NCBI GenBank assembly: GCA_024704765.1
Contig: JAKMXF010000345.1
Location: forward strand, 124,001-188,000
Length of the DNA: 64,000 nucleotides
DNA from: Oopsacas minuta
Lineage: Eukaryota > Animalia > Porifera
Direction: 5' to 3'
The notes under the pieces are model-generated. The model saw only the letters and a program-made list of their open reading frames with translations. It ran no database searches and was not told the DNA's origin. Shown here in pieces: positions 5,701 through 25,668 of the stretch; the first letter of the stretch is position 1, and the number at the start of each line of letters is the position of its first letter. A program made the position numbers and the translations under genes.

Positions 5701-8700
5701 ACAATTGTCATCTGATGAAGTCGATGAGTTTGTTGGTGATTCTGATAACGAGAATTCTGATACAGAACTTGTAAGCACCCCCACTGCAAGTAGTGCAAGT
5801 AGAGAGGGTAATTTTAATGATGACATAGTTCACAGTAAGGCAATAGGTGTAAAGAAACGCGGAATGTTACCAGCTCCACGACCTGATATTGGTAAGACGA
5901 TTTTACTCATAGTCTTATGAGAATTTGAGAACGATCTTCTAAGCCAGCTGTTCCCAACTTAGGTTCCATGGGCCCGGATTGGACACGTCCCATAGATTTG
6001 TCCAAAGTTCATAGATTTTGTTTGTGGCATGAAATTTGTGGGGACTTCTCATCTGGCAACAATGTCCACTGTTGGAGAAAGGTTGGAACAGCTGTTTTAA
6101 GCGCTCGAAAGTAGGGCCATATACAACCAATGATGATAGTTACATTCAAACAGGTGGCCTCAGTCTTTGGAGTATTCTACGTAAGAACATTGGCAAAGAT
6201 CTATCACGTATATCAATGCCAGTAGCATTGAATGAACCTCTTAGTGCTTTACAACGATTATCAGAAGAACTTGAATATTCAGAATTAATTGATAAAGCTT
6301 GCCAGTGTGAAGATGCATATGATCGTATGTTGTATATTGCTGCATTTGCATTATCACCTTATTCTACGTCATATTACCGAGCTGGACAGAAGGTTTTTAA
6401 TCCGGTTTTGGGTGAGACCTACGAGTTAATTGATGAGGAGCATAATTTCAAGTTTATTGCTGAACAGGTAAAGTTATATACAGTGTAACCTCCACGAACG
6501 GGATACCTAAGACGCCGAAAATGCTACCCCAGTTTGTGGACGTCATTTGTATGGAATTCACTTTGTTTCCAGAAGTTTCTCGTTTCCACAGGGGCCCAGT
6601 TTGTGGAGGTTTTCGTTGTATTTATACATTGAATTATCCACATCTGCCCTGTTTAATTTTCCTTGAGAAACTTCCCTTTTTCATTAAATTATACTCTATT
6701 GCAGCTTTCCCAACCTGAGATCCTCCATGAAACCCTTGATGGTCCACGGGTAACCGAAGGGTGTCTACATGATCTCAAATTTCTATTACAGTCTGTATTA
6801 TACTCAATTACTACTAGTCTTACTTATTCTAACCGTATTTAGGTATCACATCACCCTCCTGTATCAGCTTGTCATGCTGAAAGTCCTAACTTTATGTTCT
6901 GGGAAGATGCTAGACTTAAATACAAATTCTGGGGACAGTCTATGGAACTCTATCCAACTGGTTAGTAACTACAAAAATATTATTGTTAATTTGCTAGAAA
7001 ATTGTGAGGATTTAATCACTGCTATTTTTTGAATGAATTCTTTGGTTCTGAATATGTCTTTATAACAATCGCTGGCAACTTGCAATCACCCACGATCCCT
7101 ACGTATTAGCTAGAATCCACTGGAATTTATCTAATTGCACTATCTGAATAGGCTTTATATAATTCTCATCAATTTACTTTCATTTATTGAGAGAGATTCG
7201 TCTTAATCGGTAAAATGATTTGTTTTTATGCTCCTGTTATATAGTACACGGATATATCGAAATACGATTATATGAGTTATATCGATGTCTGAAATTGTAC
7301 AAATATGGCCCCAAGCCGTCAAAGTACAGTCAAAGCTCAACGGACCATATTAATTACCTCAATATATCCGTGTTCGATATCACGATAGTTGACTGTAGTA
7401 ACCTCCTTATTCTAAATACGAACACAGCAAAATTCCAGATAAGACGAACAAATTTTGATTGTCCGTTAGAAATCGTATTAAAAAGGATTCATTAGGTATT
7501 TCATCAGGGGGGGTATATCGAAATAATCATAGCGGTCTCTTAACTTCGTTATAACGTGAGTTTACTATTGTAACTATTCTAGGCAGAATAAATCTTTTGT
7601 TATCAGAGAAATCAGAACATTATACTTGGTCAAAGGTAACCACATGTGTACATAACCTGCTCAATTTCCAGAGTAGATGGATTGAAAACTATGGAGATAT
7701 GCTTGTGACGTGTACTAGCACTGGAGTAACTTGTAATATTTGTTTGTCGAAGAGTAGTTATTTCTCGAATAAGAAGTATGATATTAAAGGCAATGTTATT
7801 TCTGGTGAAGGAGAAAAGGTAAATAGATTTCGTGTTGATGAAATGCATTGCTTTTACAACAATTGGCAATGTCGCAGACAATGCTTTCAACGCCTTGTTC
7901 TTGTCATAAGTCAAAGTTCATGCCAAAGAGATCTTTTAGCTTTGTATATTGATCTGGCAACACTACCCAAAGGGCAAAAATCATTTTCTATAGTTCTTAT
8001 TATTTCTATTTCCCATTATATTGAGGCTTATTTGGTAATAATTGAAAATATCTTTGTACATATTTTGTTGCTAGGTACGTCATTTATTCGGTATGCTGAA
8101 AGAAGGTATCTATTCTGGTACTGAAAATGGAGAACATGTGTGTCTTTGGCGTCCAAACCTGATGCCTCCGAATTCCGAAACTTATTACGGGTTTTCAAAG
8201 TTTGCTATGGAATTGAATTATCTTCCTGAAGAGATGAAAGAATATTTACCTCTGTAAGTCGATAGTTATGTACGTGTTTGTCAGTTGATTAGTGATTACG
8301 ATTACAGGAAATGTTGTAATCGATTACTACCTACCTATGATTACAATCGATTACAACGAATACAATTTCGATTTTCTTTAAGATGTTACCATTGTTCCTA
8401 TTACGTCATTGATTAAATCATGTTATGTAATTGTATGTAATCGATTACAATTAACAACGGTCTTTCCTATAATCATATGTATACGATTACAATTGATTAC
8501 AAACGATTACATTTGTAAACCTTATCAGCCCGCAAGTTGATGTTAGCTATGAAATTGGCGAAAACGATCGGATTCATTATCCATGGTCCAGTCTTTCCTG
8601 AGGAACAATTTTTTCTAGATCTGATTCAAGATTCCGTACTGACCAACGTCTTCTAGAAGATGGCTATCTTCCGCAAGCTGAGGAAGATAAACTACGAATC

Positions 8701-8868
8701 GAACAAATTCAGAGAGATGTTAGAGCAAAGCGTGAAGAAGTTGGAGAAGAATGGCTCCCTAATTTTTTTGAAAAACAAGAACACAATGATTTATGGATAT
8801 ATAGACAAAATTATTTCTCAGCACGTGAGGCAAAATTCGCAGATATTCAAATACCAAAATTATGGTAA
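2763..8868 (+). CDS. OSBPL6: Oxysterol-binding protein-related protein, ORP3/6/7 subfamily (PH - FFAT - ORD), multi-exon
   Basis: Exon 1 (2763-3000) and exon 2 (3405-3673) give a PH domain ([17 protein letters not shown]...[13 protein letters not shown]...WSLAL). FFAT-like SIFFDAFED near 5636. ORD signature [40 protein letters not shown] at 6160-6280. EQ|VSHHPP across 6467/6842. Last exon ends IPKLW* at 8868. The specific paralog name is uncertain. Confidence 0.9.
8285..8512. repeat. Cluster of (TC)GATTAC(A) motifs in both orientations inside an OSBPL intron
   Basis: About ten gattac/gtaatc motifs within about 230 bp, probably subterminal repeats of a non-autonomous element. Confidence 0.5.
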
Positions 8869-9430
8869 CCACTTCATATACATGCATATATATATTTACT
8901 GTATACTGTCAGATTTAGGTGAGAAATATCCTATTGGTGATGTCATATGTTGAATACAGAATCCCAATGAATTGTTATATGTTATAACATTTTGACCACC
9001 TCTGTCCTCACCTCCTTTTTTTGCGCTTTTTACCGTTTTGTAATACGAAAATAATGAGCTGTCACATTTTGCACACCACACCTCTCCCCTTGTAGCGTTT
9101 CGCGACGTTTGACGGCTCTATAATCATTTCTCACTCTGTACGGTTGCTCATGCCCTGAATATTTTGACCAATTACTCATCTGACCCTTCCTATCCGTGAC
9201 CCATGATCCATTGTGTGACCCATTGGGGCTGTGAATGTGCCCTGCGTCCCGCGGCCCTATCCGCGCATACTTTAAAGCTACACTAATATGTAAAATGATT
9301 AAGATATGAAAATAATAGAATAAGGATAAAAAGGTATTTGTTTCGACAAATTGGATATACGTAATAGTGAATATATGTGTGTGGTCCTAACTAATAAGTA
9401 ATGAAGTTATATGAGCTGTAAGTTATCATG

Positions 9431-10768
9431 TTATAGGAGCTGCCAAACTAAGAACGACAGCAATAAGAATAGAAGGAGTATGCCTTCAGATGCCAGTTTA
9501 TTGACACCTGAACATGTAGACATGTCTGAATTCAGTGTGAATCCAGTGTTACAGGAACATGTATAGGAGCCATTTGTATTAGTACATACTTGATCACAGT
9601 TATTATCTGCTGAATTAGAACACTCATCCATGTCCACACAAGTGTCATTTTCGAATAGATATCCAGCTTCAACACATTCACAAAATGAACTGTTAAGAGT
9701 ATTAACACAAACGCTATCTGATGAACAGGTAACTGTGAAACAATTGAAGGAAGACTGATTGCAAAAGAGATAGTTTGAACTGTTAGAAATTGAATTACCA
9801 TTCGTACATGTTCCTATAATTGTCCAACCCAAATTATCTGTCACGTGATTAGTCCATGACATATCACAATCACAATTGAATGGATTACCTCTTGCATCTA
9901 TAGTATTTAGTGATTTCTGTTTTTCAAAGAATTTCTGGTCCAATGTTTGTAACTCACCATATAGTACAATTAATGTCTCAAGTTTAGGGAATGTGTAATT
10001 TAGTAGAAAATCGATAGTATCTGAATAACTAAGATCTAAAGACGTCAATTCATATAATCCAGTAAATACATTTTCTCCAAAGATTGCATTCAGTTGAATA
10101 TTGTATAGCCTGAGGGTTCTCAGCGTTGTGATATTTGCAAAGAGATTTCTGGGAAATTCTTGCAGCCCTGGACCAAATAAGTCAATTCTTTCAATACTTA
10201 TCGCATTTTCAAATGCATTTTCAGCCAACTTATACCATTCTATGTTTGAAACAAAACGTAACGATGTTAGTTGAGGTTAATTGAGCATGGAAGAGTCGAT
10301 AGTAATTAGTGAAGGGAGTTTCAAATCTAATATGTCGATGGTTGTAAGACTGGTGGTATTAAATATAGGAAACCCATTTATTGTCATTCTATTCATAAAT
10401 ATTAATTCCAAGTTGGTGAAACCGATTAGAACATCTTCAGTAACGGTTAAGGTATCGCCTTTATTGAAAAGTACATACCGAATATCTGGCGCAGGATTGT
10501 TGAAAATAAGTTCATTATTTCCATATACGTGTAAATATAAAAAAGAAACACCAGCAGGAATATCTAACATGATTGTTTGCCCTTCCATTCCCCTGATATG
10601 ATAGGTATGTGAGCTGGAGGGGGAACTCGCGTTATTGATACAATCCTGAATAAGTGAGGTAACATTTGCAGGATCACTTGTTGTAATATCACAAGTTATT
10701 TGGCTAGAGACTAGTGAGATAGTTCCGCAGAATAGCCAAAGAATGGCAGAAATACAAATGAACATCAT
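9431..10768 (-). pseudogene. Intronless LRR + LRRCT + EGF/EGF-Ca cell-surface protein, probable GPI-type C-terminus, interrupted by one in-frame TAA at 10277-10279
   Basis: Signal peptide MMFICISAILWLFCGTISLVSS at 10768. The two ORFs (10277-10846 and 9431-10228) are in the same frame, joined by SSMLN*PQLTSLRFVSNIEWYK. LRRs (LRTLRLYNIQL, LTSLDLSYS), LRRCT (GNPFNCDC), Ca-EGF (DMDECS...CDQVCTNTNGSYTCSCNTGF), hydrophobic C-terminal tail. Could be a nonsense allele or a base error rather than a fixed pseudogene. Confidence 0.7.
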
Positions 10769-11548
10769 GTTTAGATAATTTCTTTGAATACAAACAAATA
10801 TGCAATTTGATACTTTTGTTACGAATTTATAATATTCTGGAATCAAATCTGTATATTCACATGATGTCTTACGTAACTCGAACTACGATGGAAACTATGA
10901 GAACTATTGGGATTACTCTCCAACCAAAAAAATGTAAGATCCTTTCTTGTACTCCAATTGATGAGAACAGAATTTTATTATTATTTACGAATATGGAATT
11001 TCAACTGTCTTATATACCTTCAAAACGGAAATATATTCTTGAAGCAGAGGCGTAGCCAAGGTGGTCCGCACCGGTGCTTCACACCATCACCGATTTCTGA
11101 AGGGCCACCTCAGGTGGTGCATATTTTATGGTGATCCGCACCAGTGCATGTGTTGTGGGCACAATTTATGAGACTGATAAACAAATTGTTTCAAATGTTT
11201 GTTTATATTAACAAATACGCCGAGCTTTATTAACTGAAAATATTCTCTTGTGTGAATACTACATATGTAACCAGCGCACCTCCATAAGTTATATCCTTGC
11301 TACGTCACTGTCTTGATTTATATTTAAATTAGCTATTTGTTGAATATTATGAGTATAATCCCATTCATAAGTAGCTATCGATTCCAGAGACCGAACCAAA
11401 TCTAGCAACATTGTATACGCGTACACATCAAACTATCTAATACAGTGCAACATTTCTATTATATTATACGTATGTAGAATACCATCTGCACAGTTTATAG
11501 AATTTTTCAACTAACAGTTTATTTGATATTGAATAGCAATAGTACGTC

Positions 11549-14500
11549 ATGGCTCGTACCAAACAAACTGCACGTAAATCATCAGGAGGTAAAGCACCAA
11601 GGAAGCTTTTAGCCTGCAAATCACCTACGCAATTTCGTCAATACATGACCAGTCAACAAGCAGTTTCTTACCAAACTTCTAACAATGAAAATACTGCTAA
11701 AACTTCTTATCTTAACTATGAAAATGTATTTGGTTCATTTGGTTTTCCTGTTGGTGAACATATTAAGGAGACTTTCAAGCCAAAATTTGATGCAGGTATG
11801 TATTTTATTTTTACTGTGCTTTTTATCGGATACAGTGTCAGCTCCACAAACGGAGTGACAGGTACGCCGAAATTGTTATCCCCTTCCTGCTAAATCCCCC
11901 GTTTGTGAAGGGTAATTTGTATGGGATTAGGAATTCGCTCTTATATTTTTCCCTGCGTTTCCACAGGCCTCATTTGTGGAGGTTGCTGTATAAGTATTTC
12001 CTATTCCACCCAAAAATTCGAAAATATCCAGGTAGAGAAGAGAGTTGGTAATTAAATACAAATTCTATCATACATACAATTCTGCCTTTCTCAACCCTCC
12101 CATAGGCTGAAATACAAATTTTGAGATCCTGTGGATTCCCACCTGTTGTCCGTGGACTACCCCCAACTGATGTCTATCATAGTATCCCCATATCTCCTTT
12201 TAGGCTATAGCATAAATCCCGTCAATAAAACCAGTGAGCCGTGGCTTTGCATGAAGTTGAAATCAAAATTTGATGGTTCAGGCATGGAAAAGCATCACAG
12301 ACCAAATCTCAATATCGTTCTTGTCATCGATATATCTGGTAGTATGGGAACACCAATGTCTAATGAAGATGGATCAATGCTTGCTGGGGAAACTAAATTA
12401 CAAGCTGCTCAAAAGTGTATGTTAGCTATCTGTGAGAAATTCACTGATATTGATTGTGTGGGATTGATTGCATTTGATGACAGTGTGAGTAATATTTGTA
12501 TGAATACTGTGGAACCTCGTTAATATGAACACAAACATATGGCCAAAATGTGTCCGTCTTATCCAGAAATTCGTATTCGCGAAGTTCCACTGTAGTTGAG
12601 ATCTGTTGGAATACAGACAATTCACACCATAAAATTTTCGATTTTTTGTAATATGAGTTATATGACGTCACTCAATATATCCAAGAGTGTAGGCATAGAA
12701 ATAATCACAAATCCGCGATATACCATATCTTTTTGATGCCATATACCTCTTTATCCCCTGCTGAAATATCCTAAATTCGTACCATGGATAACTATTGATG
12801 TGCTAATTCGGTTATAGATATACGGTATTGACCTGTGCAGTGCTATCCTTTTCCTAGTTATCCGTGGTGCAGTCAAGTTATGGTGGAACAGGTCTGTTTC
12901 ATACTATTATGTTCTGTGTTTATATAATTTCGATATATTTATTGTGATTTTGTAGGCATCAATTGAACTTAAGCTAACAAAATGGCAGTTGATTCAGAAG
13001 GACGTTCTCAGCAATAAGATTAAAGCACTCTCAACACGAGGGATGACTGATCTATCCCTTGCTTATAGGACTGCTACTAGAATGGCAAAAGATGCTGGTA
13101 AGTATATGCACAGTGGAACCTGATATATAGAAAACATCGATTTCGACTGTATGCAAATCCTCCATATAAGTATTATGCTGTCCAATCTAGCGAGAACAAC
13201 AATTAAACAGATCAACCAAATCCACCATCCATGGTTCAATAACTAATAAGCATATATGGACCATTTTATCGAAACACGCTGGCCACCTACCGTTTAATCG
13301 CGAAAATTTGAGAATATCCATATTTCCCTCTCTCTCTTATAGGCGAGAAAGTGAACAAATACTCTCGTATAATTTTCATGACAGATCTCAACAGTACAGT
13401 AGATAGTGTTAGAGATGAAAAGAATTTATTGGCTAATATTGAGAGTAATTCGAAAATCAATATATTTACTACAGTAGTAGGTATTGGTATGGATTTTAAT
13501 GTCACTCTTGTACAGAAGATTAGTTCTACACCAGGTAAGGAATGGAGTCTTGGTAGTCTCATTTTTAGTACAGCTCCTTAAGGAGATGCCCTCCTAATGG
13601 CGTGTATGTTGTGCGGCCATGTGAAATCTAGCTGTCCGATTTATATGAAAATTGGAATTTGGGTTAGAGTATGATTAATCACCAAAAGGTTGTGAAAATT
13701 GACTTAAGAAAAAATTCATACCCCCCTGGTATGAATTTTTCTTAAGCGAATTTCCTCACCTTTTTGGTGATTTATCATTTTTCACACCTTTCTGTGTAAA
13801 TTAGAAAGAGTACTAGAGATTACATTTCAACGTGTTGTCAGGGTAATTGAGTGCGTAGATTCAGATTTTGGGGTTTTTAGAGCCGATAAGTGTCAAATTC
13901 ACAGTTTTGTCATATGATACTTGAGATTTCGTTTCGACTGCTAGACAGGGGTAATCGTGTATGTAGATTGCAAATTCACGATTTCGAATTTCTCTCTACA
14001 TGATTTATCAAATAATTCATATTTCATACTTTTTCCAATCATTCCAAGTGATGCTAGATAATTTTCGCGGTTATAGACAACCTTATTATATGTACGTATA
14101 TTCATATTTTCAGATCTTTTTATCTGTTTTAGGTGCGAATTATATCAGTGCTAGCAGCGGAAATGAGTTTGTAGAGGTAGTAGGGAAGGAGTTTAACTAC
14201 AATGTGACAATAACCGCGTTTAACATCAAAGTTGAGTTACCTAAAGCGCAAAATACTTTAGAGTTTATGAATGGGTATGGATCTCCTGAAGTATCAGATT
14301 TGAAGAAGAAAGATCATTTTACTCTATCTTCTGAGTTTGCTTCCGCTCAGAATAGAGATGGTGAAATATCTGGTGGGGTATTGCTGTTCAAGCTTAAGCA
14401 GTTGAAGAAAGGTGATTTGTTGTTGATATTTTCCTATAGATGTAATGACCAAATAAGGAATTTCGGGGGAAACCCAATTAGCCATCTCTTACCTTTCCTG

Positions 14501-17113
14501 GAAATGTTGCCAGATGATGGATGTGTTCACAAAGTTCATGGCACAAACTTGAAGGTTCATGCCGTATGCCATTTTCTTACCAAAAAACAATTCATTCCAA
14601 AACTAAAAGTTTGTGCCAAAGTTCTTGGTACATGTCAAGTTGATGCCAAAAGTCAAAAGTTCATCCCAAATTCATGCTATAATCAATAACTTAAGTCCAA
14701 AGTCAAAATTCGCGCCAAAGTCCAAGCCAGAGCCAAAAATCTATGAACTTTATTTATAATCTTGCAGTACTGAACGCTTGCTACTCAGCTGATAATACAC
14801 ATTTCCTTTTAGGTACAACTCTCAAGATCAAACTAAGTTTCAATGACATATACACTTCAAATCACACAACATTAAACTTCACTGTACAATTAGAAGATAC
14901 AATAACTGACATAGCTTTACGTAAAGCTATTCTATTGAAGCATTTTGTTGATCTGCATAATGATTATGTTATGGAAAAGAAGGGAGTTATACATTTGGAG
15001 AGATTTCAGTCTTTTAAGAAACATTTGATGCAAGAGATGGAAGATGTCAAGGATAATTCTCTTCTTTATAATAATGCAGGTATATTTATACATAACATTA
15101 AAGGAGCGCAGTCCATATTTGTAGGACGCACACGCTGGAGCACGCTCCTATTTAATTGCAAAGAATTTACAAATTTCATCGTTATTCTGCATGAATTCAG
15201 TATTCTTGCTATAAAAAGTGACTGCTATGACACTTTTGTATAATTCACAATTTATTGAAAGGTTTGACTTTGCACATTTAGTAATTTCCCGAATGTACAA
15301 TGGTTAATTCAATCCTGATTACTTAAAATACAAATCTAATGAAAATCTGAAAGAATGAAAAGGAGCGGATTGGAGCGTGCTCCTTTTTTTCTGGAGTTCG
15401 ATCCGGAGCGCACTCCTTTTCTGAGCGGAGGTGGGAGCGCCTCTCCTTTACAGGGCTGGAGCGTGCTCCAAAAATGAGGAGCACTTAATGCTCTATGTTT
15501 ATGCCAAATATTGTACAATGGAAGCTGGTTATAACAACCTCCTTATGAGTAGCAATGTGTTCTTATGACCGGAATCCAGTGTTTACAGGTTACTCTGAAT
15601 AACGGATACTGCAGGATAGGGCCTGTGAAATCGCTGATAGAAAGAACTTTATATTGACATTATATTTTGGCATTTATTCCTATTTTGATGGGCCAGATTT
15701 TTGCCCTTTTCTGCCTTGTCCTTTCGAGTCGTATTTTGCACGGATTTCCCAAGCTAATACGCGAAATTATGTTTATGTCCCTGAAAAAACTTGCTAATAG
15801 GCGAACGTACTGGATTATATTTCAATTCTAGTTTACATGGAGATGACTGATAAGATAATTGATCTTGAATTAAAGCACCAGAAGAACCCTTCATCATCAA
15901 AAGTTTCTATACCAGGTGTTAATACCAGTAAATTCAGGCCTTCTTTCTCTCTATCTCCTCCTGCCAGCACTTTAAAGGGGAAAACTAAGAATAAGGTAAT
16001 TATCAAAAATCACAATAGTCAAGTCCTGTTGTAACGAACATGGATATATCAAATCCCACGAAGTCTGAAATTGTACAAATATGGTCACAAACCCTCAAAA
16101 ATACCATAAATCTCATCGGCTATATCGAACTCTGCTTGTGACGGCGTAATTATCGCGGTTCCTTGAGTTCCTTCTATATTCTGGAAGCATATTTAAGGGG
16201 CCGTTTAGACCTCAAGTAATGCTTTCAATGATGAATCGTTTTGTATTGAAATAGACTTCACATTGGGAGAGGCTTATATACAGGAATTTAGCTTTTTTAC
16301 GAAACCTTTGAACTTGTCCTAAAATTTAGTTTCTTATGGAAAAACTAAAGGTATGGATAATTCAAATGCCTTACGAGTAAGTTCCTGAGGCGTAACCATG
16401 GTGGCGAAACCTCACTTCTAGTGCTGGCTCTTCCCCTCAAGTAACATTACATTTATACTATATGTACATTTTCATAGGCCCCGAAGCGAATTACAGCATC
16501 GAAAGGTAGAAAAACTAAAAAGGCAACTCCAGTCAAAGCAACCAAGAAACCCACACTAATAAAGCCCAAAGTTACTTTCAAAATCGAGCCGATCAAAGTA
16601 GAACCACCTGACACGAAACCTGTACTTCCTACACGAGTTTCTACTAGAAAGAGATCTGCTCCAATGGATTATATGGCTATAAGTCCAAATAAGAAAATGT
16701 AAGTAGTTTTATTTAGAAATGATGACGTGATATATGAAGGCATTAAAATTTGATAATTATTTGTGGTAAAGCCAGACGTATGCAGTTCAGACTCATGAAC
16801 CTAATTGAGCCAATGAGTTGATGCCATTTGTCCTATTTACCTGCATATTTGATGAAATACCAAAGCATCCAATAATACATTATTTTATGCAATTCTATTC
16901 TTCAGGAAAATAGCTATAAAAGCTAAGTCGCCAGTAAAGAAATTGGCAAAAAGAAATACAGTTAAAGTGCCCGTCAAAAAGTTAGCTAAGAAAACTTCAG
17001 CAAAAGCAGCAGCCACAAAGTTGACTGGTGCAAGGAAAAAAGTTGATAAAAATGTAAAAATTGGCGTGAAAAGGATTCCCAACAAGGATAGAATTCGAAA
17101 GAGGATATATTGA
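11549..17113 (+). CDS. Histone H3 N-terminal-tail / vWA (MIDAS) / histone-H1-like basic tail fusion protein, 9 exons, about 666 aa
   Basis: Exons 11549-11795, 12204-12484, 12956-13097, 13343-13534, 14133-14411, 14813-15079, 15832-15995, 16478-16698 and 16906-17113. All are GT-AG with matching phases, total 2001 nt. Starts MARTKQTARKSSGGKAPRKLLACK. vWA motifs: NLNIVLVIDISGSM, GLIAFDD, RGMTDL, RIIFMTD, TTVVGIGMDFN. Lys/Ala/Pro-rich C-terminus. Confidence 0.8.
13678..13772. repeat. Foldback inverted repeat (about 45-bp arms) in intron 4 of the H3-vWA gene
   Basis: atcaccaaaagg...cttaagaaaaaattcatacc / ggtatgaatttttcttaag...cctttttggtgat are near reverse complements. Confidence 0.7.
15103..15486. 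repeat. Repeated quasi-palindromic GGAGCG(T/C)(G/A)CTCC motifs in intron 6 of the H3-vWA gene
   Basis: About seven copies (for example near 15103, 15137, 15372, 15405, 15435 and 15458), forming a GC-rich patch in AT-rich DNA. Confidence 0.6.
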
Positions 17114-17678
17114 ATGAAGTGCCTTGAATCCTTGCATGCGAGTTTTATACTTTACTTATCAGTTTTAGATTTTTCACATTTATTTTCTATTTTTTGTGGC
17201 TAGTTTTGATGCCTTTATTTTCGATAATTCCTTACTTTTGTTGAAAAACTGACTACAAATGTCTGTCTTCTTGAATTTGATATTATTTATATAACATTCA
17301 GTTTCGGATATGTTAACATTTCCTCTATACTCTTAAATACTGGGAAACCTCGATAATTATTAAAAAAACGGTTAATTCTAATTTCCGTGGAAAAACTGGC
17401 AAATATTACACAAAATCCTACAACGATGGTTATTCAATAGGTATTATTCCGGATAAAGTGAACACATTTTGATCGTTCATTCGTGTTCATATTTACGATA
17501 TTCCATTAAATATGTCATAACTAACAATGCAAGAAGATAATATATGAGTTGTCTCTTCCATTTTGTTTTTTGGACAAATTACAAGTTGATTCACGAATGA
17601 ATATTTAAGTCATATGCTTGTTCATGAGTTGCATGATTATAAACTAGAGAAATCCTGTGAAATTGTCGCTATAATCCT

Positions 17679-20627
17679 ATGGGCCTTACCAGAAGGAAGA
17701 AGAAACGAACTCATATTTCTACTGAACCAGGCAAGAAGGGTGATGTTGGAGAACGTGCTGGTAACGTCCTTCCTGATTCTGTGAAGAAACCGCCAGCATG
17801 CTTCATAATTGGTGAGTAAATATAATTATACTTATATGACAGGTTTGGGTATGCACTATGCTGATATTTTTTGACAATTTCCTCTGCAGTTTTACAAATG
17901 TTTGGTCGCTTTACACTTCCTCATAAATTTGCGTTGAATTTTTCAGAGTGCTTCCAGACCACATTGGCGTTACTTACAATATACAATATATAAATTGTTC
18001 GAACATTTGATTATGCCTTGAAAAAATGTAATTCCCACTTTATTTCGCCTATTAGGTAGAGGTCAACTGAACATATATCTCCAACAACTAATATCAGATC
18101 TGAAATTTGTCTACGAACCAAATACTGCATCAAATTTGAAAACTACGAAAAAGAATTCTCTACGAGATTTCCTACATGTTGCTGGCCCTTTGGGTGTCTC
18201 ACATTGCATTGTACTTAACTTCTCAGGAAATGCGCCTACAATACGCTTCGCAAGATTCCCACATGGCCCAACGGTAACCTTTAAAGTTCTAGAATATTCT
18301 TTAATGAGAGATGTTGTGTCGTCACAAAAACGGCCGAAAATTATTCAAGATCTTCATTTAAATTCTCCTCTATTAGTATTGAGTCAGTTTAATGAGCAAA
18401 TTGTGACGGAGAATGAAGGTAAGTTCATTTTTCTATTGAAACTGAGGTTTTCGGGAATTTGTTGGCGGGCACGTGCCGTTTGCGAAATTCCAGCATTCTT
18501 CGAAATATTTCCTGGATCTTCAAGTTTTAGATACATAAATAGCAATATCAAGGCTAATATTTAGGAGAAAGTACATATGTTTGCGACTATTTCTCTGGAT
18601 TCTTGTAAATTCCCGTGATAATCCATCGATCGCGCCCATTTTTCGGAGGATATTTATTTCTCCGAGCGTAAATTTCATATAAATTAATTCTTCTACAGAC
18701 TCAATAGAACCAGATTCTGTAAAGCAAATTACTCCACGTTGCCTCAAACTATTATCTACAATGCTACAGAATATGTTCCCTTCCCTCAACGTACATAATG
18801 TAAAACTGAAGCAGGTTTGTGTGTAATGTACGTGTTGAATATAGTTACAATCTGTGCCGCGGCCGGAAAGTATATAAATGGCAATATACGATATAATTTT
18901 AGCTCCAACGCACTTAGTGCCTAGAATTTATAGTGCCATTTTAAATACATTTAATTAACATTCAAGACAGTTGGTACAGATTATACATTTGTTTGGCTCA
19001 ACCATAATGTTGAAAATACACTTAGTGCCTAGAATTAAGTGCCATTTTAAGTAAATTTAATTAATACTCTAAGCTGTCCGCACAGATTATTAAGTTTTTG
19101 CTCAACCATAATACAAACATACACTTAGTGCCTAGAATTTATAGTGCCATTTTAAGAATTTAATTAATACTCTAAGCTGTCAGCACAGATTGTAAATTTA
19201 GACTTTTCAAAAAATGGAAGTTTTTAAGAAGTTTGCATAGTAATTATTGATACAATTATGGTGGCGTCATTATTATCATGGCCAATCCATTCCACTTGAA
19301 TTACACTTCACAGGTAAAGCGATGTGTTCTATTCCATTACGATGCCGCCTCCAATCAAATCCATCTACGTCACTACTGTATTAAAACTAGTCCTCAAGGC
19401 ATACGTAAACAGGTTGATAGGCTAGCTAGACATAAGATACCGTCTCTAGCCAAGTATGATGATATTAGTGATTATCTTATGAGGGAGAATCTGTCTGAGA
19501 GCGAGCCTGACGATTTACCAGAGGCTCAGGTTAGTTTTAGAATATGTATTCCTACTCCCAAGAGGCAATATAGATTGGTCCGCACCATGAAAATACACCT
19601 TTTCTAGGTTATACTACCACAATCTTTACCTGGAGCTGGAAACAAAATATCTCAGAGAAGTAAAATACGTCTCTACGAGTTAGGCCCACGATTAACTCTA
19701 TCTCTGATTAAAATACAAGATTCTTTGTTTGATGGGGAAGTTCTCTACCACATGTATGTTCATAAATCTAAAGAAGAGATTGCTTTCATGAGGAAGGAGA
19801 AGGCAAGGATCATAAATGAAAAGGTATAATATATGGATCACAGTTCTATTGCTTTCGTAAGATTACAATCTGTGCCGACAGCATAATGCATCAAATGCTA
19901 TACTATGCTGTAGGCACAGTTTGTAATTTTTTACTCAAAATGCATAGCAAAAATCTTGTACGTTGAAATGTGCAAATTGCCTTGGAATTTATAAATATTT
20001 TCTTCTTTGTAATTATAGACAAGACGACGTAAATTACAAGAAGCTAATGTTAGACGTAAAGAAGAAGAAAAACAGATACACCGTAAGAGAACTTTAGCAG
20101 GAATGCGAGCACATAATCAGAAGGATACAGAGTATAGTAGTGATGATGACTTTGAGTATTATAGACAAGAAGTTGGTGAGGATCCTAGCAATGAGTTGTT
20201 ACTTTCCAAAGCTAAACGAGTGAAATTTGATACAAATAATGGAGATTTTTCTGATGATGAACAAAGTAAAAGACCTAATTTCCGCAGCGGAAAGTCAAGT
20301 TTTCGAGGTGGAAAGCGAGATTTTGGTGGTGCAGAGCGAAAGTTCCATGGCGGTAACAAACGAAATTTTCACGAAAATGGCAAAGTTGGGAGAATTGATA
20401 GACATCGAGGTTTTAAAAAATCAGAAAATGGTTCTCAATTTCGCGCGAAGAGTTATTTTCAAGGCCGTGAAGGATCAAATTTTAGAGATAGAAAGGGTAG
20501 AAATAATTTCACAGACAGTAGTGCACGGGGAGGAAAATTCGGGAACAGTAATAGTGCGAAAGAAAAGTACAGCAAACCACGGAAGGCACCAGGCGGTAGA
20601 GTCTTTAGAGTTAGAAAACGAAATTAA
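17679..20627 (+). CDS. PPAN: Peter Pan / Suppressor of SWI4 (Ssf1) Brix-domain ribosome biogenesis protein, multi-exon
   Basis: Start MGLTRRKKKRTH at 17679. Motifs YEPNTASNLKTTKKNSLRDFLHVAGPLGVSH, RFPHGPTVTFKVLEYSLMRDV and ELGPRLTLSLIKIQDSLFDGEVLYH. Basic Gly/Arg/Phe-rich C-terminus ends at 20627. Confidence 0.93.
18911..19195. repeat. Minisatellite, about 2.7 copies of a 103-108 bp unit, in a PPAN intron
   Basis: cacttagtgcctagaatt...gtgccattttaa recurs at about 18911, 19019 and 19122, and the intervening sequences are also similar. Confidence 0.85.
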
Positions 20628-20829
20628 TTGATGATACAATTATAGCGATATTTCTCAATTTATAGCTTTCAATTGAAATTCCACATTCTATAGTGTAACC
20701 TCCACAACGGGCAACTTCTGGAAACGGAGTGAAAAGTAATAGAGCGAATTCCTAGCCTCATACAAACAGAGTACCATTTTCGGCGGCCCTGACACTCCGT
20801 TTGTGGAGATTACACTGTTTTAGATTTCA

Positions 20830-22413
20830 ATGCAATTAGCCATGAATTCCTTAGAATTCATACTATTAATTACATGCATACAATTGGCCGAACCACAAAT
20901 GCTCGTTGTAAACACATGGCCGTTTAAGGACGCCACTAAAACTGCAGGTTATCATCTATCAATGCTTTCTACAGCTATAAACGCTGTTGTATATGGCTGT
21001 AGTGTTTGTGAAGTTGAGCAGTGTGATCATACTGTTGGTTATGGAGGTAGCCCTGATGAGAAGGGAGAGACTACGCTTGATGCTATGGTTATGGATGGTG
21101 ATACTCTTAATGTTGGTGAGTATGCGAAGATTTTATTTCAGCTCCTATAGGGAGATGCCTAAACAACCGTATGCACAACCGTGCGAATTCTAACATTCCG
21201 TTTTTGACAGATTTATCATATGATTAATCATGTTTCACACCTTATTGCATATTTCCCAATGATCATGAAATTCCGTTTCAACTGTGAGTCAGGGTAATCG
21301 AGTACTTAGATTCCAATTTTGATATTTCAAATATATATATATTTACGCATATATTATTTCACACTGTCTACTATACAGGTGCAGTTGGAGATCTACGTAA
21401 CATTAAAAACGCGATACAAGTTGCCCGTGCTGTACTAGAGCATACAAACCATACTTTACTAGCTGGTGAATCTGCTACGAACTTTGCTGTAGAATCGTTA
21501 GGATTACAAAAGACCAACTTGACAACGGAATACTCTTCAAAAATGTGGAAAAATTGGTTGGAAGCTGATTGCCAACCTAACTATTGGTATAATGTTTATC
21601 CAGATAGCAAAAAGTCATGTGGTCCTTATTCTATACAGAAATCTTATTCCAATAACCTCAAAAAATCGAAAGGTATGTAATTCATACATTGGTAAGGTCC
21701 CTTTTGATGAGAAACTTGTTTCAGCTCCACATGATGTTCATCGAAGCATGCGAGGCGGAGTTTTATTATCATATCGATTATCGGACAAATTATCGGAAAT
21801 ATTGAAGCAATATAAAAAATGTCGAAAATTCTAATTTCCTAATACTTCGATATTTTCCTAATTTCAGAAATATCGAACCGATATCGATATTTGCCAAACC
21901 TTTGCTGAACCAAGTTTTCAACATAATAGATGTATTTTCTATATTTCTATAGAACATATGCCAAAAGGCGAGCAACCTATTTCCCATGACACTATAGGAA
22001 TGATTGCAATTGACTCCAAAGGAAAAATCGCCACGGGAACAACTACTAACGGTCTCATCCACAAGATACCCGGACGAGTCGGCGACAGTCCTATAATGGG
22101 TGCAGGGGCATACGCGGATTCGAGTGTAGGCGCAGCTGTCGCTACAGGCGATGGTGACGTCATGATGCGGTTTTTACCCACGTTTCTTATTGTAGAGTTA
22201 ATGCGTGGAGGTGTGTCACCACAATCTGCATGTGATACTGCAATCGAACGGATTCGTGTGAAATATCCTAAATTCCAGGGGGCTGTACTTGCTGTTGGGA
22301 AGGATTTGAGTGTTGGTGCGGCTACTTGGGGCTTTAACCCATTCACTTATACACAATATAATTTCACTGATGGATTGCCTTATACAGTTAAAATATATCC
22401 TAAAGAATCGTAG
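20830..22413 (+). CDS. AGA: N(4)-(beta-N-acetylglucosaminyl)-L-asparaginase (aspartylglucosaminidase), 3 exons
   Basis: Exons 20830-21115, 21379-21672 and 21953-22413 with matching phases. Signal peptide, [28 protein letters not shown], catalytic HD|[29 protein letters not shown]. Confidence 0.95.
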
Positions 22414-23009
22414 TTATATATTTGCTGTTTATTTGGGATAATGGTATATATTATTTATTATTTTGGCAATTGAAATTTAACCATAATTTAGGCTTGTTTC
22501 AGCTCCACTACCCGCATGAATATTGTCATTAATAGAATTACAGTCAGCTCACATTATATCGAAGTTCAAGGGACAGCAATAATTCCTTCGATATATCTGT
22601 GTTGATATTACGGGCAGTTTACTGTATTATAATTATTTCACCATTGAAATTACTAACTAATGGGTGGATATTAATGATTTCATCTCAGCAAAGATTTTCC
22701 ATGAATTAGCCACTCAATGCCAACGTCACAACATTGTCTTTTCAACAAATATTAATTTCGAGTTAAAGAGCATTATAATTTAATATACTGAGTCAGAGGT
22801 TGATTTGCTTGGTTTTATCTTGTGTCATGGAAACACTCATAATCCAAATTCAACATTTTTATACCATAAATTCATCCATGTATGTATTCTAAGAACCATT
22901 TTACCGAATTTCGTAATCAATATTAACGATTATATCATTCAGAATATAACTTCAAAATTCCATATATAGCATTTGGTATAAATAGATTTTTAGGCATAAT
23001 TTCGTGAAA

Positions 23010-23873
23010 ATGGACATGTTATTTTTTCGCGTTTTTATTCCGTTTTGTTTCTTTCAAATTGTCCAAAGCTGTACAGTTAATATTCTCTGGGACTCAACGT
23101 ATATTCATGGTATTTCTACTATTCCTAATGGAATGATTTTGCCACCAAATTCATCAACTTGCGCTTTTCACATAGGCTGGAGAATTATATTAAATACTAC
23201 GAAGGATGGACAGTTTGAAAGGTTGTGGCTTGTTGATAGTTATGCGCATTTTCGCGTTTGTAACACCACAAATGCGATTATTTTCGAGGAGTTTACAGGC
23301 GTTTATGAGTTCTCTCTCTCGCCTGGAATATTCTCATTTGATTCTGTGTATTACTTTTTCTCCACTTCGAATGAACCGAATTTTACTGCGGACTTTTGCA
23401 AACTGAAACTATCATTTTTGCTAAAACCGGTTTCTTCTGTCTGCAATTTGCAACCAGAATGCGATTCAAGTAGTTTAGTAATAATACAAACAGCAACAAA
23501 CAACATCACAAGCATTCCTACGATCTTTCAAATTGATTATTTCAATTTGACAACGTTACAACTCTTCGTAATAGTAGCTATAGGGATTGTTGGGATATTT
23601 GCATTTTGCATGTGTTTGATTCCAATGGCGATATACGTGTATTTCCACCGTGAAAAACGTATTGATGAAGAAATCTCGATAGATTTTGAAGATGAAATCG
23701 GTTTGGAGGAATATTTGAAAAGATTTTTGATACTAGAAGATGATTTTCAAGTCGATAAATATTCAGAGCCGAATTCGCCGTTCAAAGATTCAGCATTGAC
23801 TGTTACTATTCCTCAATCTAGTGTATTGTCATGTAATAATATCTATAGAGCACCTTCTGTTACAACAGTTTGA
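23010..23873 (+). CDS. Ephrin-like (cupredoxin-fold) single-pass membrane protein 1, most divergent copy
   Basis: Intronless. Signal peptide, VNILWD, FERLWLV...FRVCN, YYFFSTSN, TM segment, tail ending SVTTV*. Confidence 0.6.
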   Translation: MDMLFFRVFIPFCFFQIVQSCTVNILWDSTYIHGISTIPNGMILPPNSSTCAFHIGWRIILNTTKDGQFERLWLVDSYAHFRVCNTTNAIIFEEFTGVYEFSLSPGIFSFDSVYYFFSTSNEPNFTADFCKLKLSFLLKPVSSVCNLQPECDSSSLVIIQTATNNITSIPTIFQIDYFNLTTLQLFVIVAIGIVGIFAFCMCLIPMAIYVYFHREKRIDEEISIDFEDEIGLEEYLKRFLILEDDFQVDKYSEPNSPFKDSALTVTIPQSSVLSCNNIYRAPSVTTV

Positions 23874-24792
23874 TATTTTTGTGTAAATTCGTGACTTATT
23901 TGTATTTTTTCTAATTAGGAATATATTTATGAAGGTTGCTTTGGGTTCTCCCTCACTGCTAGATCCCATTCATCACCGTTGCTCACCTAATAGCAAGTTT
24001 ATTCAGGGGAGTCAATTTTGTGATGGAAATAATTCCTCTAATAGCATTTCGCGTATTATTATCAAGGAAATTCGTGCAAAATACGACTTGCTAATGGGCG
24101 AACTCCATTTTAGGGAATTTGTTGTCGGAAAAGTTTAGGAAATTTTGATTATCCAAAAGGTGTCAAATTCGATAATTTTCTGTTAGAATTTTGTGAACAC
24201 GGTCTCAAAAATTCAGGTTCATTCCGCATTGCTCTCGTAGCATATAGTAAAGAAACAGTTCAGAAGGGTTTGCCCCACAATATCGAAAATAATTCAAAAT
24301 ATTTTTGAGATAGAATTCCAAGTTTTACCAGGCATTTGAACCATCAAAACTCTGAAAAGACATCACAATATCAGTTCACAGATGTAATTTCAAATGTAGC
24401 CATTTTAGAGTATAAGTTACCATGGATAACTACAAAAAATGAACTTTCTTTGTTCGTTACCACAACATTATTCTTTCTATGTAATTTTCTGGTGTAAGCA
24501 GTTAGTTCCATCTTTTTCCAAGTTCAAATTCTCACCTCTTTATTGTCACCAATTTTACAATTGAATATAAATTCCGGCGCCATATCTCCTCACCATAGCA
24601 ATAGAATAGTTCAATTGGCATTCATGTTATAGATTTAGCGCTTTAGACATTTCTATGAAATTAGGGTTTCGTGAACACACCAATGAACAGTTATTGAATT
24701 CTGGTTTGGAAAACTTATCTTTGCATTTGATAGTGATTCTCTTTGAGGAAATTTCTATTTATTTGTATTCAAATTGTAATTATTATTCCAGC

Positions 24793-25668
24793 ATGAAATT
24801 CGATATAATTATCTTGATATTGAGTTTTAGAATATCTGTGGTAGAATTACGAGTTTGGAATGTTCTCTGGGAACGAGACTTTTGTTCACAAGCTCTCCCC
24901 GATACATTTATATATCCGTTTAACACGAATTGTAGTTTGTGTACATCTGATCAATTGCGGTTACACACACCAAATATTGGCAATTATGAAAATGTTTATC
25001 GCGTCGAAACTGAGCAAGAAATGTTAGCTTGTAATGCAACAAATGCATTGAACACTTCACCACTGATTTTTAATACAGAAACAGTATTTACGCTTATTAA
25101 CAGTGGATCTAGTGATAATGCTTTCAACTTTTACCTTGGACAATGGATATATTTGATTTCCACAAGCAATGGGACTAAACACAGTGCAAGGAATGATGTC
25201 ACGCGGCCTGTTAATTCGTGCCTACAATTCTCGTTTGTATTGTTAACGTTTGGGCAGAATTGCGGAAATTTTGACACGACGTGTAGTATGACGAGCGTTT
25301 TCACTGATAACTCGAGTCGAATAGGCTGTGAATCAGCTATCATTTCGGAAATTGTAACAGAATTAAATTCCACAGAAAATTCCACAAATTCTACAACAAA
25401 ATATCATACAAATAATTACACTATCTCTTCGCCGTTTATGTTAAAAACAGTTTTGAGAAGTTCAATTGCTTTCATCTCAATTGGAATTTTCATTTTTCTT
25501 TTCATACTTACTTGCTTCATTCTAAGCCTGATAATCACATATCGTGTGGTGAAATGCAACAAATCAAAACGCCTATTGCAAATCCACTATCAGCTAGAAC
25601 AAAATAACCTTGATGGAGAAGACAAGGAATCAAGAAGAAATAGTTTCGAATTTGTTGAACCAGTTTGA
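24793..25668 (+). CDS. Ephrin-like single-pass membrane protein 2
   Basis: Intronless, start MKFDIIILILSF at 24793. Motifs WNVLWERDFC, YENVYRV...MLACN, WIYLISTSNGT, NSCLQ. TM segment, tail ending EFVEPV*. Confidence 0.65.
   Translation: MKFDIIILILSFRISVVELRVWNVLWERDFCSQALPDTFIYPFNTNCSLCTSDQLRLHTPNIGNYENVYRVETEQEMLACNATNALNTSPLIFNTETVFTLINSGSSDNAFNFYLGQWIYLISTSNGTKHSARNDVTRPVNSCLQFSFVLLTFGQNCGNFDTTCSMTSVFTDNSSRIGCESAIISEIVTELNSTENSTNSTTKYHTNNYTISSPFMLKTVLRSSIAFISIGIFIFLFILTCFILSLIITYRVVKCNKSKRLLQIHYQLEQNNLDGEDKESRRNSFEFVEPV

Follow-up and report, generated by a model that had tools for sequence, protein, structure and literature searches.

The 64,000-nucleotide stretch of DNA from the glass sponge Oopsacas minuta that is analyzed here (the window; positions 124,001 to 188,000 of contig JAKMXF010000345.1, assembly GCA_024704765.1, forward strand, with positions below counted from its first letter) contains a gene for a von Willebrand factor A (vWA) protein that begins with the tail of histone H3. 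An earlier note on this DNA had proposed an endogenous H3-tail mimic on a vWA protein bearing a metal ion-dependent adhesion site (MIDAS). This proposal stands, and it can be extended in two respects: the family is wide among eukaryotes, and its members are mostly U-box or RING E3 ubiquitin ligases. A complete H3 tail is thus found on a non-histone family, where it is better conserved than that family's metal-binding domain. We assign a probability of roughly 50% to the reading that the tail is a portable handle, tying a nuclear adaptor or ligase to the readers and modifiers of the H3 tail.

In the translation, the tail core (A1 to R17 in H3 numbering, positions 11552 to 11602 on the plus strand) equals H3 except for T11S. 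The segment that follows, K18 to K23 (11603 to 11620, plus strand), resembles H3 in most relatives, although it varies; it reads KLLACK here, against KQLATK in H3 and in most relatives. Comparison with a canonical H3 (P0116) returned the same three differences as had been reported in the earlier note (T11S, Q19L and T22C), and thus a match at 20 of the 23 residues from A1 to K23. It had also been claimed that one exon carries both the tail and the vWA N-terminal motif, and we indeed find the frame open through SYLNYENVFGSF to a GT donor after position 11795 (exon 1, 11549-11795, plus strand). The remainder of this exon (11621 to 11795) holds the motifs FRQYMTSQQ and KTSYLNYENVFGSFGF and the start of an N-terminal domain (N-domain), which corresponds to the bacterial YfbK-type N-domain and is modeled by AlphaFold2 (AF2) with a helix at residues 26-35 (predicted local distance difference test score, pLDDT, 78-95). 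K27/S28, the K36 region and the histone fold are missing, the first and last of these as noted before; the protein is therefore not a nucleosome component. A Pfam scan of the full protein shows just VWA, VWA_2 and VWA_3, with the histone fold (PF00125) not among the matches, and AF2 yields a vWA domain, a beta-sandwich and a helical bundle. When exons were scanned singly, exon 1 gave a weak, sub-threshold match to the PAF histone-like domain (E 0.006), exon 2 matched VWA_2, and no Pfam match was obtained for exons 3-6.

We built a gene model of nine exons and 666 residues from reading frames, GT-AG sites and spliced contigs. It is identical in every residue to the NCBI Oopsacas minuta protein P0173, which bears out the nine-exon chain of the earlier note; the public annotation contains this same model and leaves the H3 tail unmentioned. 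Four sequencing runs from one sample cover the locus. Three of them (X1-X3) are DNA-like, with even depth and contigs that cross introns, and run X4 was judged RNA-like by its depth pattern and spliced contigs. The X4 contigs were produced by an assembler, from the sample that also yielded the DNA, and their depths, which are rough and a poor measure of expression, are 6,000-25,000 in exon-containing bins versus 0-14 in wholly intronic bins. Spliced X4 contigs join 11795 to 12204 and 13534 to 14133, with joints or loose ends at the remaining boundaries. Near the gene start, X4 depth rises from 270 (up to 11512) to 644 (11513-26), 3295 (11527-40) and 9355 (11541-54), and reaches a plateau of 16,000-25,000 across all tail codons. 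The rise places the transcription start zone and a very short 5' untranslated region (UTR) at 11513 to 11548 (plus strand), with a UTR length of roughly 5-35 nucleotides. A TATA-like TTTATAG is located upstream of this zone at about 11495, and the X4 contigs contain no splice joint entering exon 1. A longer N-terminus is impossible because in-frame TAG codons occur at 11540-42 and 11534-36, 9 and 15 nucleotides upstream of the ATG. The plateau together with the exon 1-2 splice thus indicates that the tail codons are part of an abundant mature mRNA, of which the start codon at 11549 to 11551 (context gtcATGg) is the first ATG.

These data bear on the possibility that the tail is an artefact or a neutral accident, resulting from mis-assembly, from a wrongly assigned start, or from a captured H3 fragment that drifts or undergoes gene conversion. 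The earlier note had itself pointed to a downstream transcription start and to a chimeric assembly as ways in which its claim could fail. Position 11549 lies inside a spliced mRNA, the tail codons are at full exon depth in X4, and both DNA and RNA contigs cross the junction between tail and vWA body; the DNA contigs X1 (11227-13250) and X2 (11201-12568) do so with zero mismatches.

A search of other assemblies with exon 1 returned 22 exon-1-like open reading frames (ORFs) of 45-84% identity, all of them with the same tail start through GGKAP. In some of these ORFs an intron directly follows KTSYL, and in others it is missing; they therefore come from lineages with different gene structures, which again is difficult to reconcile with an artefact. 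Searching 1.84 billion representatives with an exon-1 profile gave 129 matches at E<1e-10, and thus the tail is not a chance resemblance. In dozens of these matches, which are full-length proteins of 570-975 amino acids, the profile aligns from residue 1. The number of full-length relatives that start with the H3 tail exceeds 80. The taxa were named through two additional searches, for which full-length members served as queries. Tailed proteins occur in sponges of three classes (Oopsacas, Sycon, Oscarella and Corticium), in bdelloid rotifers (Adineta and Rotaria), in early fungi (Endogone, Jimgerdemannia and Cladochytrium), in the green alga Cymbomonas and in the chlorarachniophytes Amorphochlora, Bigelowiella and Chlorarachnion. 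A haptophyte-rich cluster of relatives is present in the ESM Atlas, and many marine protist contigs of transcript size also encode tailed relatives. Everywhere these proteins are annotated as hypothetical or as generic vWA proteins. Complete eukaryotic N-termini are nearly all tailed, the exceptions being mostly calls shortened to the internal Met of MTSQQ or fragments limited by contig ends; orthologs lacking the tail, which the earlier note had considered as a third way for its claim to fail, are thus not the pattern found. Relatives of bacterial type carry signal-peptide or membrane-anchor N-termini, without the tail. Four eukaryote-like relatives of the vWA body (P0240-P0243) start with MGCAASG instead and form a long separate branch; this start resembles a lipidation signal.

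We quantified conservation in an alignment of 83 tail-bearing full-length proteins, whose bodies share 25-41% identity with the Oopsacas protein. As a block score we used the fraction of sequences with the majority residue. The tail core (residues 1-18) scores 0.97, versus 0.42-0.53 for every block of the folded body, MIDAS domain included. The H3-like K18-R26 segment (residues 19-27) scores 0.53, the vWA domain (residues 119-300) 0.49 and the beta-sandwich and helical region (residues 301-496) 0.42-0.43. The C-terminal region (residues 497-666) scores 0.16. Invariant columns of the tail are M1, R3, Q6, T7, A8, R9, G13 and G14 in protein numbering, and thus R2, Q5, T6, A7, R8, G12 and G13 in the H3 numbering used for the tail from here on. 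T3, K4 and S10 are each kept in 82 of the 83 relatives, and A15, P16 and R17 in 79-82 (A15 in 82). Outside the tail, the MIDAS residues D125, S127, S129, T207 and D238 and a dozen scattered body positions are invariant. Other lysines tolerate substitutions: the K9 position is Lys in 72 sequences, Arg in 7, Gln in 3 and Met in 1; the K14 position is Lys in 69 and otherwise Met (4 of 83), His, Arg, Ser, Leu, Cys, Ala or Tyr; K23 is kept in 22. Most relatives match H3 through K18 and many through A24-R26, although K18-R26 is H3-like in the majority only, and the family motif F-R-x-Y-M-T-S-Q-Q comes next.

We compared codons 2-18 among four lineages, in six pairs. Third positions differ at 8-15 of the 17 tail codons (12-15 in five of the six pairs), with only 1-3 differences at first and second positions together. 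In the 16 codons that follow, a comparison of distant lineages shows 5-8 differences at first positions and 5-8 at second positions. Saturated third positions next to nearly fixed first and second positions indicate that the tail is held by selection on its amino acids and does not result from recent copying, which argues strongly against a drifting or gene-converted fragment.

A tree was calculated from the body alone, after removal of the tail and the C-terminus (95 rows, IQ-TREE quick search, root not established). The five sponge sequences form one clade (support 97), and so do the tail-less rows, bar one Logan protein (support 96). The tail label requires two changes on this tree; a root on the bacterial branch would allow them to be read as a single gain plus a single loss. 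This pattern, too, fits a single gain and counts against an accident. One member nevertheless gives a hint that sequence was exchanged with H3 genes more than once, or that the original fusion was longer: in the U-box protein P0194 (EukProt 557752_1), identity to H3 extends to about residue 43 (through KPHRYR) and is followed by an acidic linker, with FRxYMTSQQ missing. P0194 may mark that longer original fusion, or else a second exchange with an H3 gene. The RING member P0071 (EukProt GILJ01004994) has three tandem KQTARK units at its C-terminal end, a second copy resembling the H3 tail. Given these two proteins, some further exchange with H3 sequence may have occurred. Taken together, we consider it hardly credible that the tail as such is an artefact or a neutral insertion, and the mis-assembly and neutral-fragment readings were rejected on account of the junction-spanning contigs and the saturated synonymous sites. 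Tentatively, and with the odds somewhat against it, one can go further and regard the H3 tail as a mobile, ancient module, which would have been fused a single time onto a bacterial-type MIDAS-vWA scaffold with a ubiquitin-ligase domain, possibly in the common ancestor of major eukaryotic groups. The resulting enzymes would be treated by the readers and writers of histone marks like H3 itself.

The selected residues speak to a further possibility, namely that the tail is kept as a nuclear import signal and chaperone-binding element (H3 1-28) that uses the histone import route. The H3 tail is a known ligand of importins (Kap123/Imp4), and the Oopsacas protein is basic at both ends. However, most members already have basic clusters that resemble classical nuclear localization signals (NLSs) at their C-terminal end. 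In the Kap123-H3 complex, K14 and K23 are reportedly held in importin pockets, yet K14 is replaced in 14 of the 83 relatives and K23 is kept in 22. The residues conserved most strictly instead include the uncharged T6, A7, G12 and G13 (invariant) and T3, S10 and A15 (82 of 83). We regard an import or chaperone handle as improbable. The narrower reading of the tail as an NLS only was rejected, in view of the C-terminal clusters and the invariant uncharged residues.

The tail is attached to a vWA protein with an intact MIDAS. Pfam matches VWA (PF00092) at 51.4 bits (cut-off 23.8) and VWA_2 (PF13519) at 53.3 bits (cut-off 27) in residues 119-299 of P0173, both above the curated cut-offs. The D-x-S-x-S motif and the additional Thr and Asp of the MIDAS are intact (D125, S127, S129, T207 and D238), and the motif DISGS is encoded by exon 2 (12204 to 12484, plus strand, with D125, S127 and S129 at 12329-12343). 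An AF2 model of P0173 calculated with the family alignment (mean pLDDT 77, predicted template-modeling score 0.75) shows an N-domain, a Rossmann-like vWA domain, a beta-sandwich and a helical bundle that ends at residue 496, followed by disorder. The best Foldseek match is E. coli YfbK (E 1.6e-21, template-modeling (TM) scores 0.44/0.51, query residues 55-486), followed by Synechocystis sll0103, the inter-alpha-trypsin inhibitor (ITIH) heavy chains (ITIH4, E 1e-17), VWA5A and the plant proteins WAV3, WAVH2 and EDA40. Among Protein Data Bank (PDB) entries, archaeal ArnA/B, a Catenulispora vWA protein and ITIH1 lead, and Sec23/24 are among the lower matches. As modeled, the body is a YfbK/ITIH-type vWA module. 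YfbK, sll0103 and ITIH/VWA5A share its layout of N-domain, MIDAS vWA, beta-sandwich and helical region over residues 55-486, but in the bacterial and ITIH proteins, which are secreted or anchored in the membrane, the H3 tail, the U-box and the RING are all absent. When P0173 and five relatives were scanned for the sequence families vWF_A (PF12450) and YfbK_C (PF12034), neither was matched at E<=0.01. Bacterial models in the ESM Atlas that carry PF12450 and PF12034 align nonetheless with TM scores of 0.52-0.55 by query, starting from query residues 8-24, and the helix that follows the tail therefore belongs to the inherited N-domain.

How much of the tail is free was assessed in AF2 models of two members that share about 31% identity, the Oopsacas protein P0173 and the U-box protein P0045. 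The pLDDT values are 56 and 49, respectively, for residues 1-10, 85 and 84 for residues 11-20, and 94 and 95 for residues 21-30, and both models contain helices at residues 18-21 and 26-35. The low confidence at residues 1-10 is consistent with a free N-terminal end. Taken at face value, the models would let only A1 to roughly S10-R17 protrude and would make the K18-R26 stretch part of the N-domain. A protruding A1-S10 fits the strongest invariance, which is found at A1-R8. The same models raise the possibility that the H3-like segment is an internal ligand, docking on its own body in a structural or autoinhibitory role and possibly freed by modification, with the likeness to H3 beyond residues 1-8 serving this docking. 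The high pLDDT of residues 11-40 (81-95), the same two helices in such divergent members, and the alignment of bacterial YfbK-type models from query residues 8-24 are in line with this idea. Bacterial relatives, however, have the N-domain without H3-like sequence, so that the fold does not need the tail, and a 17-residue identity to H3 across distant eukaryotes is hard to explain through packing alone. Docking on the body thus seems to us quite unlikely as the reason for the likeness.

The C-terminal modules of the 83 relatives were typed using our own hidden Markov model (HMM), built from 30 motif-confirmed U-boxes. We found a U-box in 45 relatives, a RING in 20 and neither in 18; the five sponge sequences all fall into this last group, as do a few truncated models. 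Neither U-box (PF04564) nor RING was detected by Pfam in the Oopsacas protein, nor were they found in the other sponge copies, whereas one or the other is present in 65 of the 83 relatives; by its domain content, the Oopsacas protein is a ligase-less member of a family made up mostly of ligases. In place of the ligase module, all five sponge copies have a lysine-rich tail that resembles the linker histone H1. In the Oopsacas protein this region (residues 497-666) contains 24% Lys and 31% Lys plus Arg, is rich in Ala, Pro and Thr, has three S/T-P-x-K/R sites and is modeled with pLDDT <50. It is like the C-terminal domain of H1 in disorder, in its K/A/P/T richness and in the S/TPxK sites, but the winged-helix globular domain of H1 (PF00538) was not matched by Pfam in the Oopsacas protein, and the likeness is one of composition only. 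Outside the five sponge sequences, H1-like C-terminal tails occur only in some of the other relatives that lack a ligase domain. A RING alongside a vWA module of this structural type is also found in the plant proteins WAV3, WAVH and EDA40 (Foldseek E about 2e-15), but they lack the H3 tail and are only about 13% identical to the Oopsacas protein. To judge by the aligned ranges (WAV3 271-677), these plant proteins have the reverse order, with the RING at the N-terminus.

Proteins of this kind could act as decoys or pseudosubstrates, in that H3 tails in large supply, soluble or bound to DNA, would titrate or inhibit readers and writers and recruit nothing. This idea is closely related to that of a handle but runs in the contrary direction. 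X4 depth reaches 16,000-25,000, compared with about 270 upstream of the gene, although expression is poorly reflected in contig depth. SET-domain enzymes are known to become trapped on H3 with Lys-to-Met changes, and some relatives carry K9M or K14M; such variants are, however, rare (Met replaces K9 in 1 and K14 in 4 of the 83 relatives). The sponge copies apparently work without a ligase domain, as a decoy could, yet a pure decoy needs neither an invariant MIDAS nor a ligase domain, both of which are conserved. A decoy function is therefore unlikely, in our view, but deserves to be kept in mind.

We favor the portable handle described at the outset. Alanine after the initiator Met permits Met removal, which should leave the same free A1 end as in H3, and this free A1-R2-T3-K4 end is required by PHD, ADD, WD40 (WDR5, RbAp46/48) and BIR readers. 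In our model, the initiator Met would be removed and the N-terminus would then be a genuine copy of the H3 tail, from A1 to about R17/K18. This handle would be recognized, and probably modified, by the readers and writers of H3: PHD, WD40, chromo and ADD readers on one side and the enzymes that act on K4, R2, T3 and S10 on the other. The MIDAS vWA domain may provide a second, metal-dependent binding surface. In most lineages, the U-box or RING would bring ubiquitin-ligase activity to complexes that bind the H3 tail; alternatively, in these lineages the ligase itself may be placed under the control of the H3-modifying machinery. In sponges, including Oopsacas, the lysine-rich H1-like tail should bind DNA, and through the protein, chromatin would gain an additional H3 tail outside the nucleosome together with a MIDAS domain. 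We infer Met removal, the nuclear location, the binding of readers and writers, and the existence of ligase and MIDAS targets. The invariant residues R2, Q5, T6, A7, R8, G12 and G13 and the nearly invariant T3, K4 and S10 make up the surface used by N-terminus-dependent H3 readers, which supports the handle, as do the presence of the tail in an abundant spliced mRNA, its shared position at the start of complete relatives, its conservation through selection on the amino acids, the basic C-termini, the U-box or RING in 65 of 83 relatives, the intact MIDAS and the low pLDDT of residues 1-10.

Several observations weigh against the handle or restrict its scope. Residues 11-35 have pLDDT values of 81-95 in both AF2 models, and over half of the H3-like stretch may thus be packed on the body; the invariance of G12-R17 is then only partly explained by a free tail. 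K9 and K14, major modification sites of H3, are the least conserved positions in the core, and the tail is not a full functional copy of H3. Ubiquitination is not the common function of the family, as the sponge copies have no ligase module. The very short 5' UTR may allow leaky initiation at Met33 (11645) for some of the product, which would then start behind the tail.

To our knowledge, histone mimicry has been known only in the form of short motifs of 3-6 residues, in viral and a few cellular proteins. Examples are the ARSK of influenza NS1, the ARKS of SARS-CoV-2 ORF8, the ARKT of G9a and the automethylation loops of SETDB1 and EZH2. The principle is the same, as the H3 tail is copied to enter a network of readers and writers, but these mimics comprise 4-6 residues, are usually internal or C-terminal and are often recent, whereas here a whole tail is found at a true N-terminus in an ancient, cellular family. 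Histone mimicry is thus a known kind of phenomenon, and the present case is unusual in its length (17-26 residues), in its age and spread, and in its attachment to ligases. A full-text literature search, with a coverage that excludes most subscription papers, found no publication that describes an H3 tail on a family of vWA, U-box or RING proteins; it yielded the known short mimics and the concept of H3 N-terminal mimics (H3TMs). The closest precedent is the set of human H3TMs, which includes VRK1, PCLAF/PAF15, BCL11B, MEF2C and others (Chen et al. 2021, PMC8166343). Mimics that follow an M-Z-R-X-K rule are reported there to bind PHD fingers and NuRD in vitro (PMC8166343). The Oopsacas N-terminus, M-A-R-T-K (residues 1-5), fits this rule, in which Z is a residue permissive for Met removal. 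As would be the case in our family, the mimic is presented at the processed N-terminus of a non-histone protein, through which the human H3TMs can engage H3K4 readers and NuRD (PMC8166343). The human H3TMs share 4-5 residues with H3, compared with 17-26 in the family reported here, in which the tail is invariant across distant eukaryotes. Here the tail is carried by a vWA/E3 scaffold, and no such scaffold is named among the H3TMs in the section of PMC8166343 that was consulted.

If the tail is indeed such an ancient module that is treated like H3, the state or activity of H3 readers and writers would be coupled to ubiquitination, for example by the marking of proteins that bind the H3 tail; in sponges, linker-DNA binding would take the place of ubiquitination in this coupling. 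The histone code would then act, unnoticed, on a non-histone protein across eukaryotes. In organisms with tailed family members, antibodies against H3 modifications would cross-react with a protein of about 70-80 kDa, and H3K4, H3K9 and H3S10 antibodies as well as mass-spectrometry peptides may report the tailed vWA protein in addition to H3. This raises the question of whether the H3 machinery acts on a non-nucleosomal substrate in normal biology, and of what a ligase gains from its likeness to H3. The variable K9 and K14 next to a constant A1-R8 represent a natural experiment on how the tail is constrained outside the nucleosome.

The remaining exons of the vWA gene are all on the plus strand. 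Exon 3 (12956 to 13097) and exon 4 (13343 to 13534) encode parts of the vWA domain; the former is defined by an X4 joint and loose ends and agrees with P0173, and the latter by X4 joints from 13098 to 13345 and from 13534 to 14133. The vWA domain ends and the beta-sandwich starts in exon 5 (14133 to 14411), and exon 6 (14813 to 15079) encodes the beta-sandwich and helical bundle. Within exon 7 (15832 to 15995), the C-terminal region, which is disordered and basic, begins at about 15912 (residue 497); exon 8 (16478 to 16698) is rich in Lys, Pro and Thr, and exon 9 (16906 to 17113) encodes the H1-like Lys/Ala tail with SPVK and ends in the stop codon. The donor of intron 8 (16696-16701) overlaps ATG|TAAGT, and retention of this intron would introduce a stop directly after the Met, removing the last 69 residues of the H1-like tail. 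Two intronic segments, at 15150-15400 and 16000-16150, show 10-40 times the local DNA contig depth and, in X1-X3, numerous alternative joints. These intronic repeats probably represent dispersed elements or pieces of transposons.

A Brix-domain gene (18136-18564, plus strand) is located directly downstream of the vWA gene. In a related sponge-like contig (L002), a Brix-domain gene (12873-13292) likewise lies downstream of the vWA gene, and a gene for an oxysterol-binding protein lies upstream. With this Brix neighbor in both places, the local gene order is partly conserved. On the minus strand of the window, ORF pieces with leucine-rich repeats and calcium-binding EGF-like sequence occupy 9431-10846, and the 5' end of this neighbor is about 700 base pairs from the start of the vWA gene.

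Viruses were considered as a source of the fusion, and this was rejected: among 44 giant-virus loci with the tail in IMG/VR, 41 are complete H3 genes, one is cut by a contig end, and zero are vWA fusions. Two giant-virus proteins place the H3 tail on other non-histone sequence. One of them (L014:4001-4438, 145 amino acids) continues into coiled-coil-like sequence, and the other (L047:4001-4936, 311 amino acids) into repeats with AT-hook-like RGRPKG motifs. Yet another non-histone architecture is seen in P0148, a protein of 657 amino acids from an AT-rich organism that carries H3 tail residues 1-26 and in which a vWA domain was not detected.

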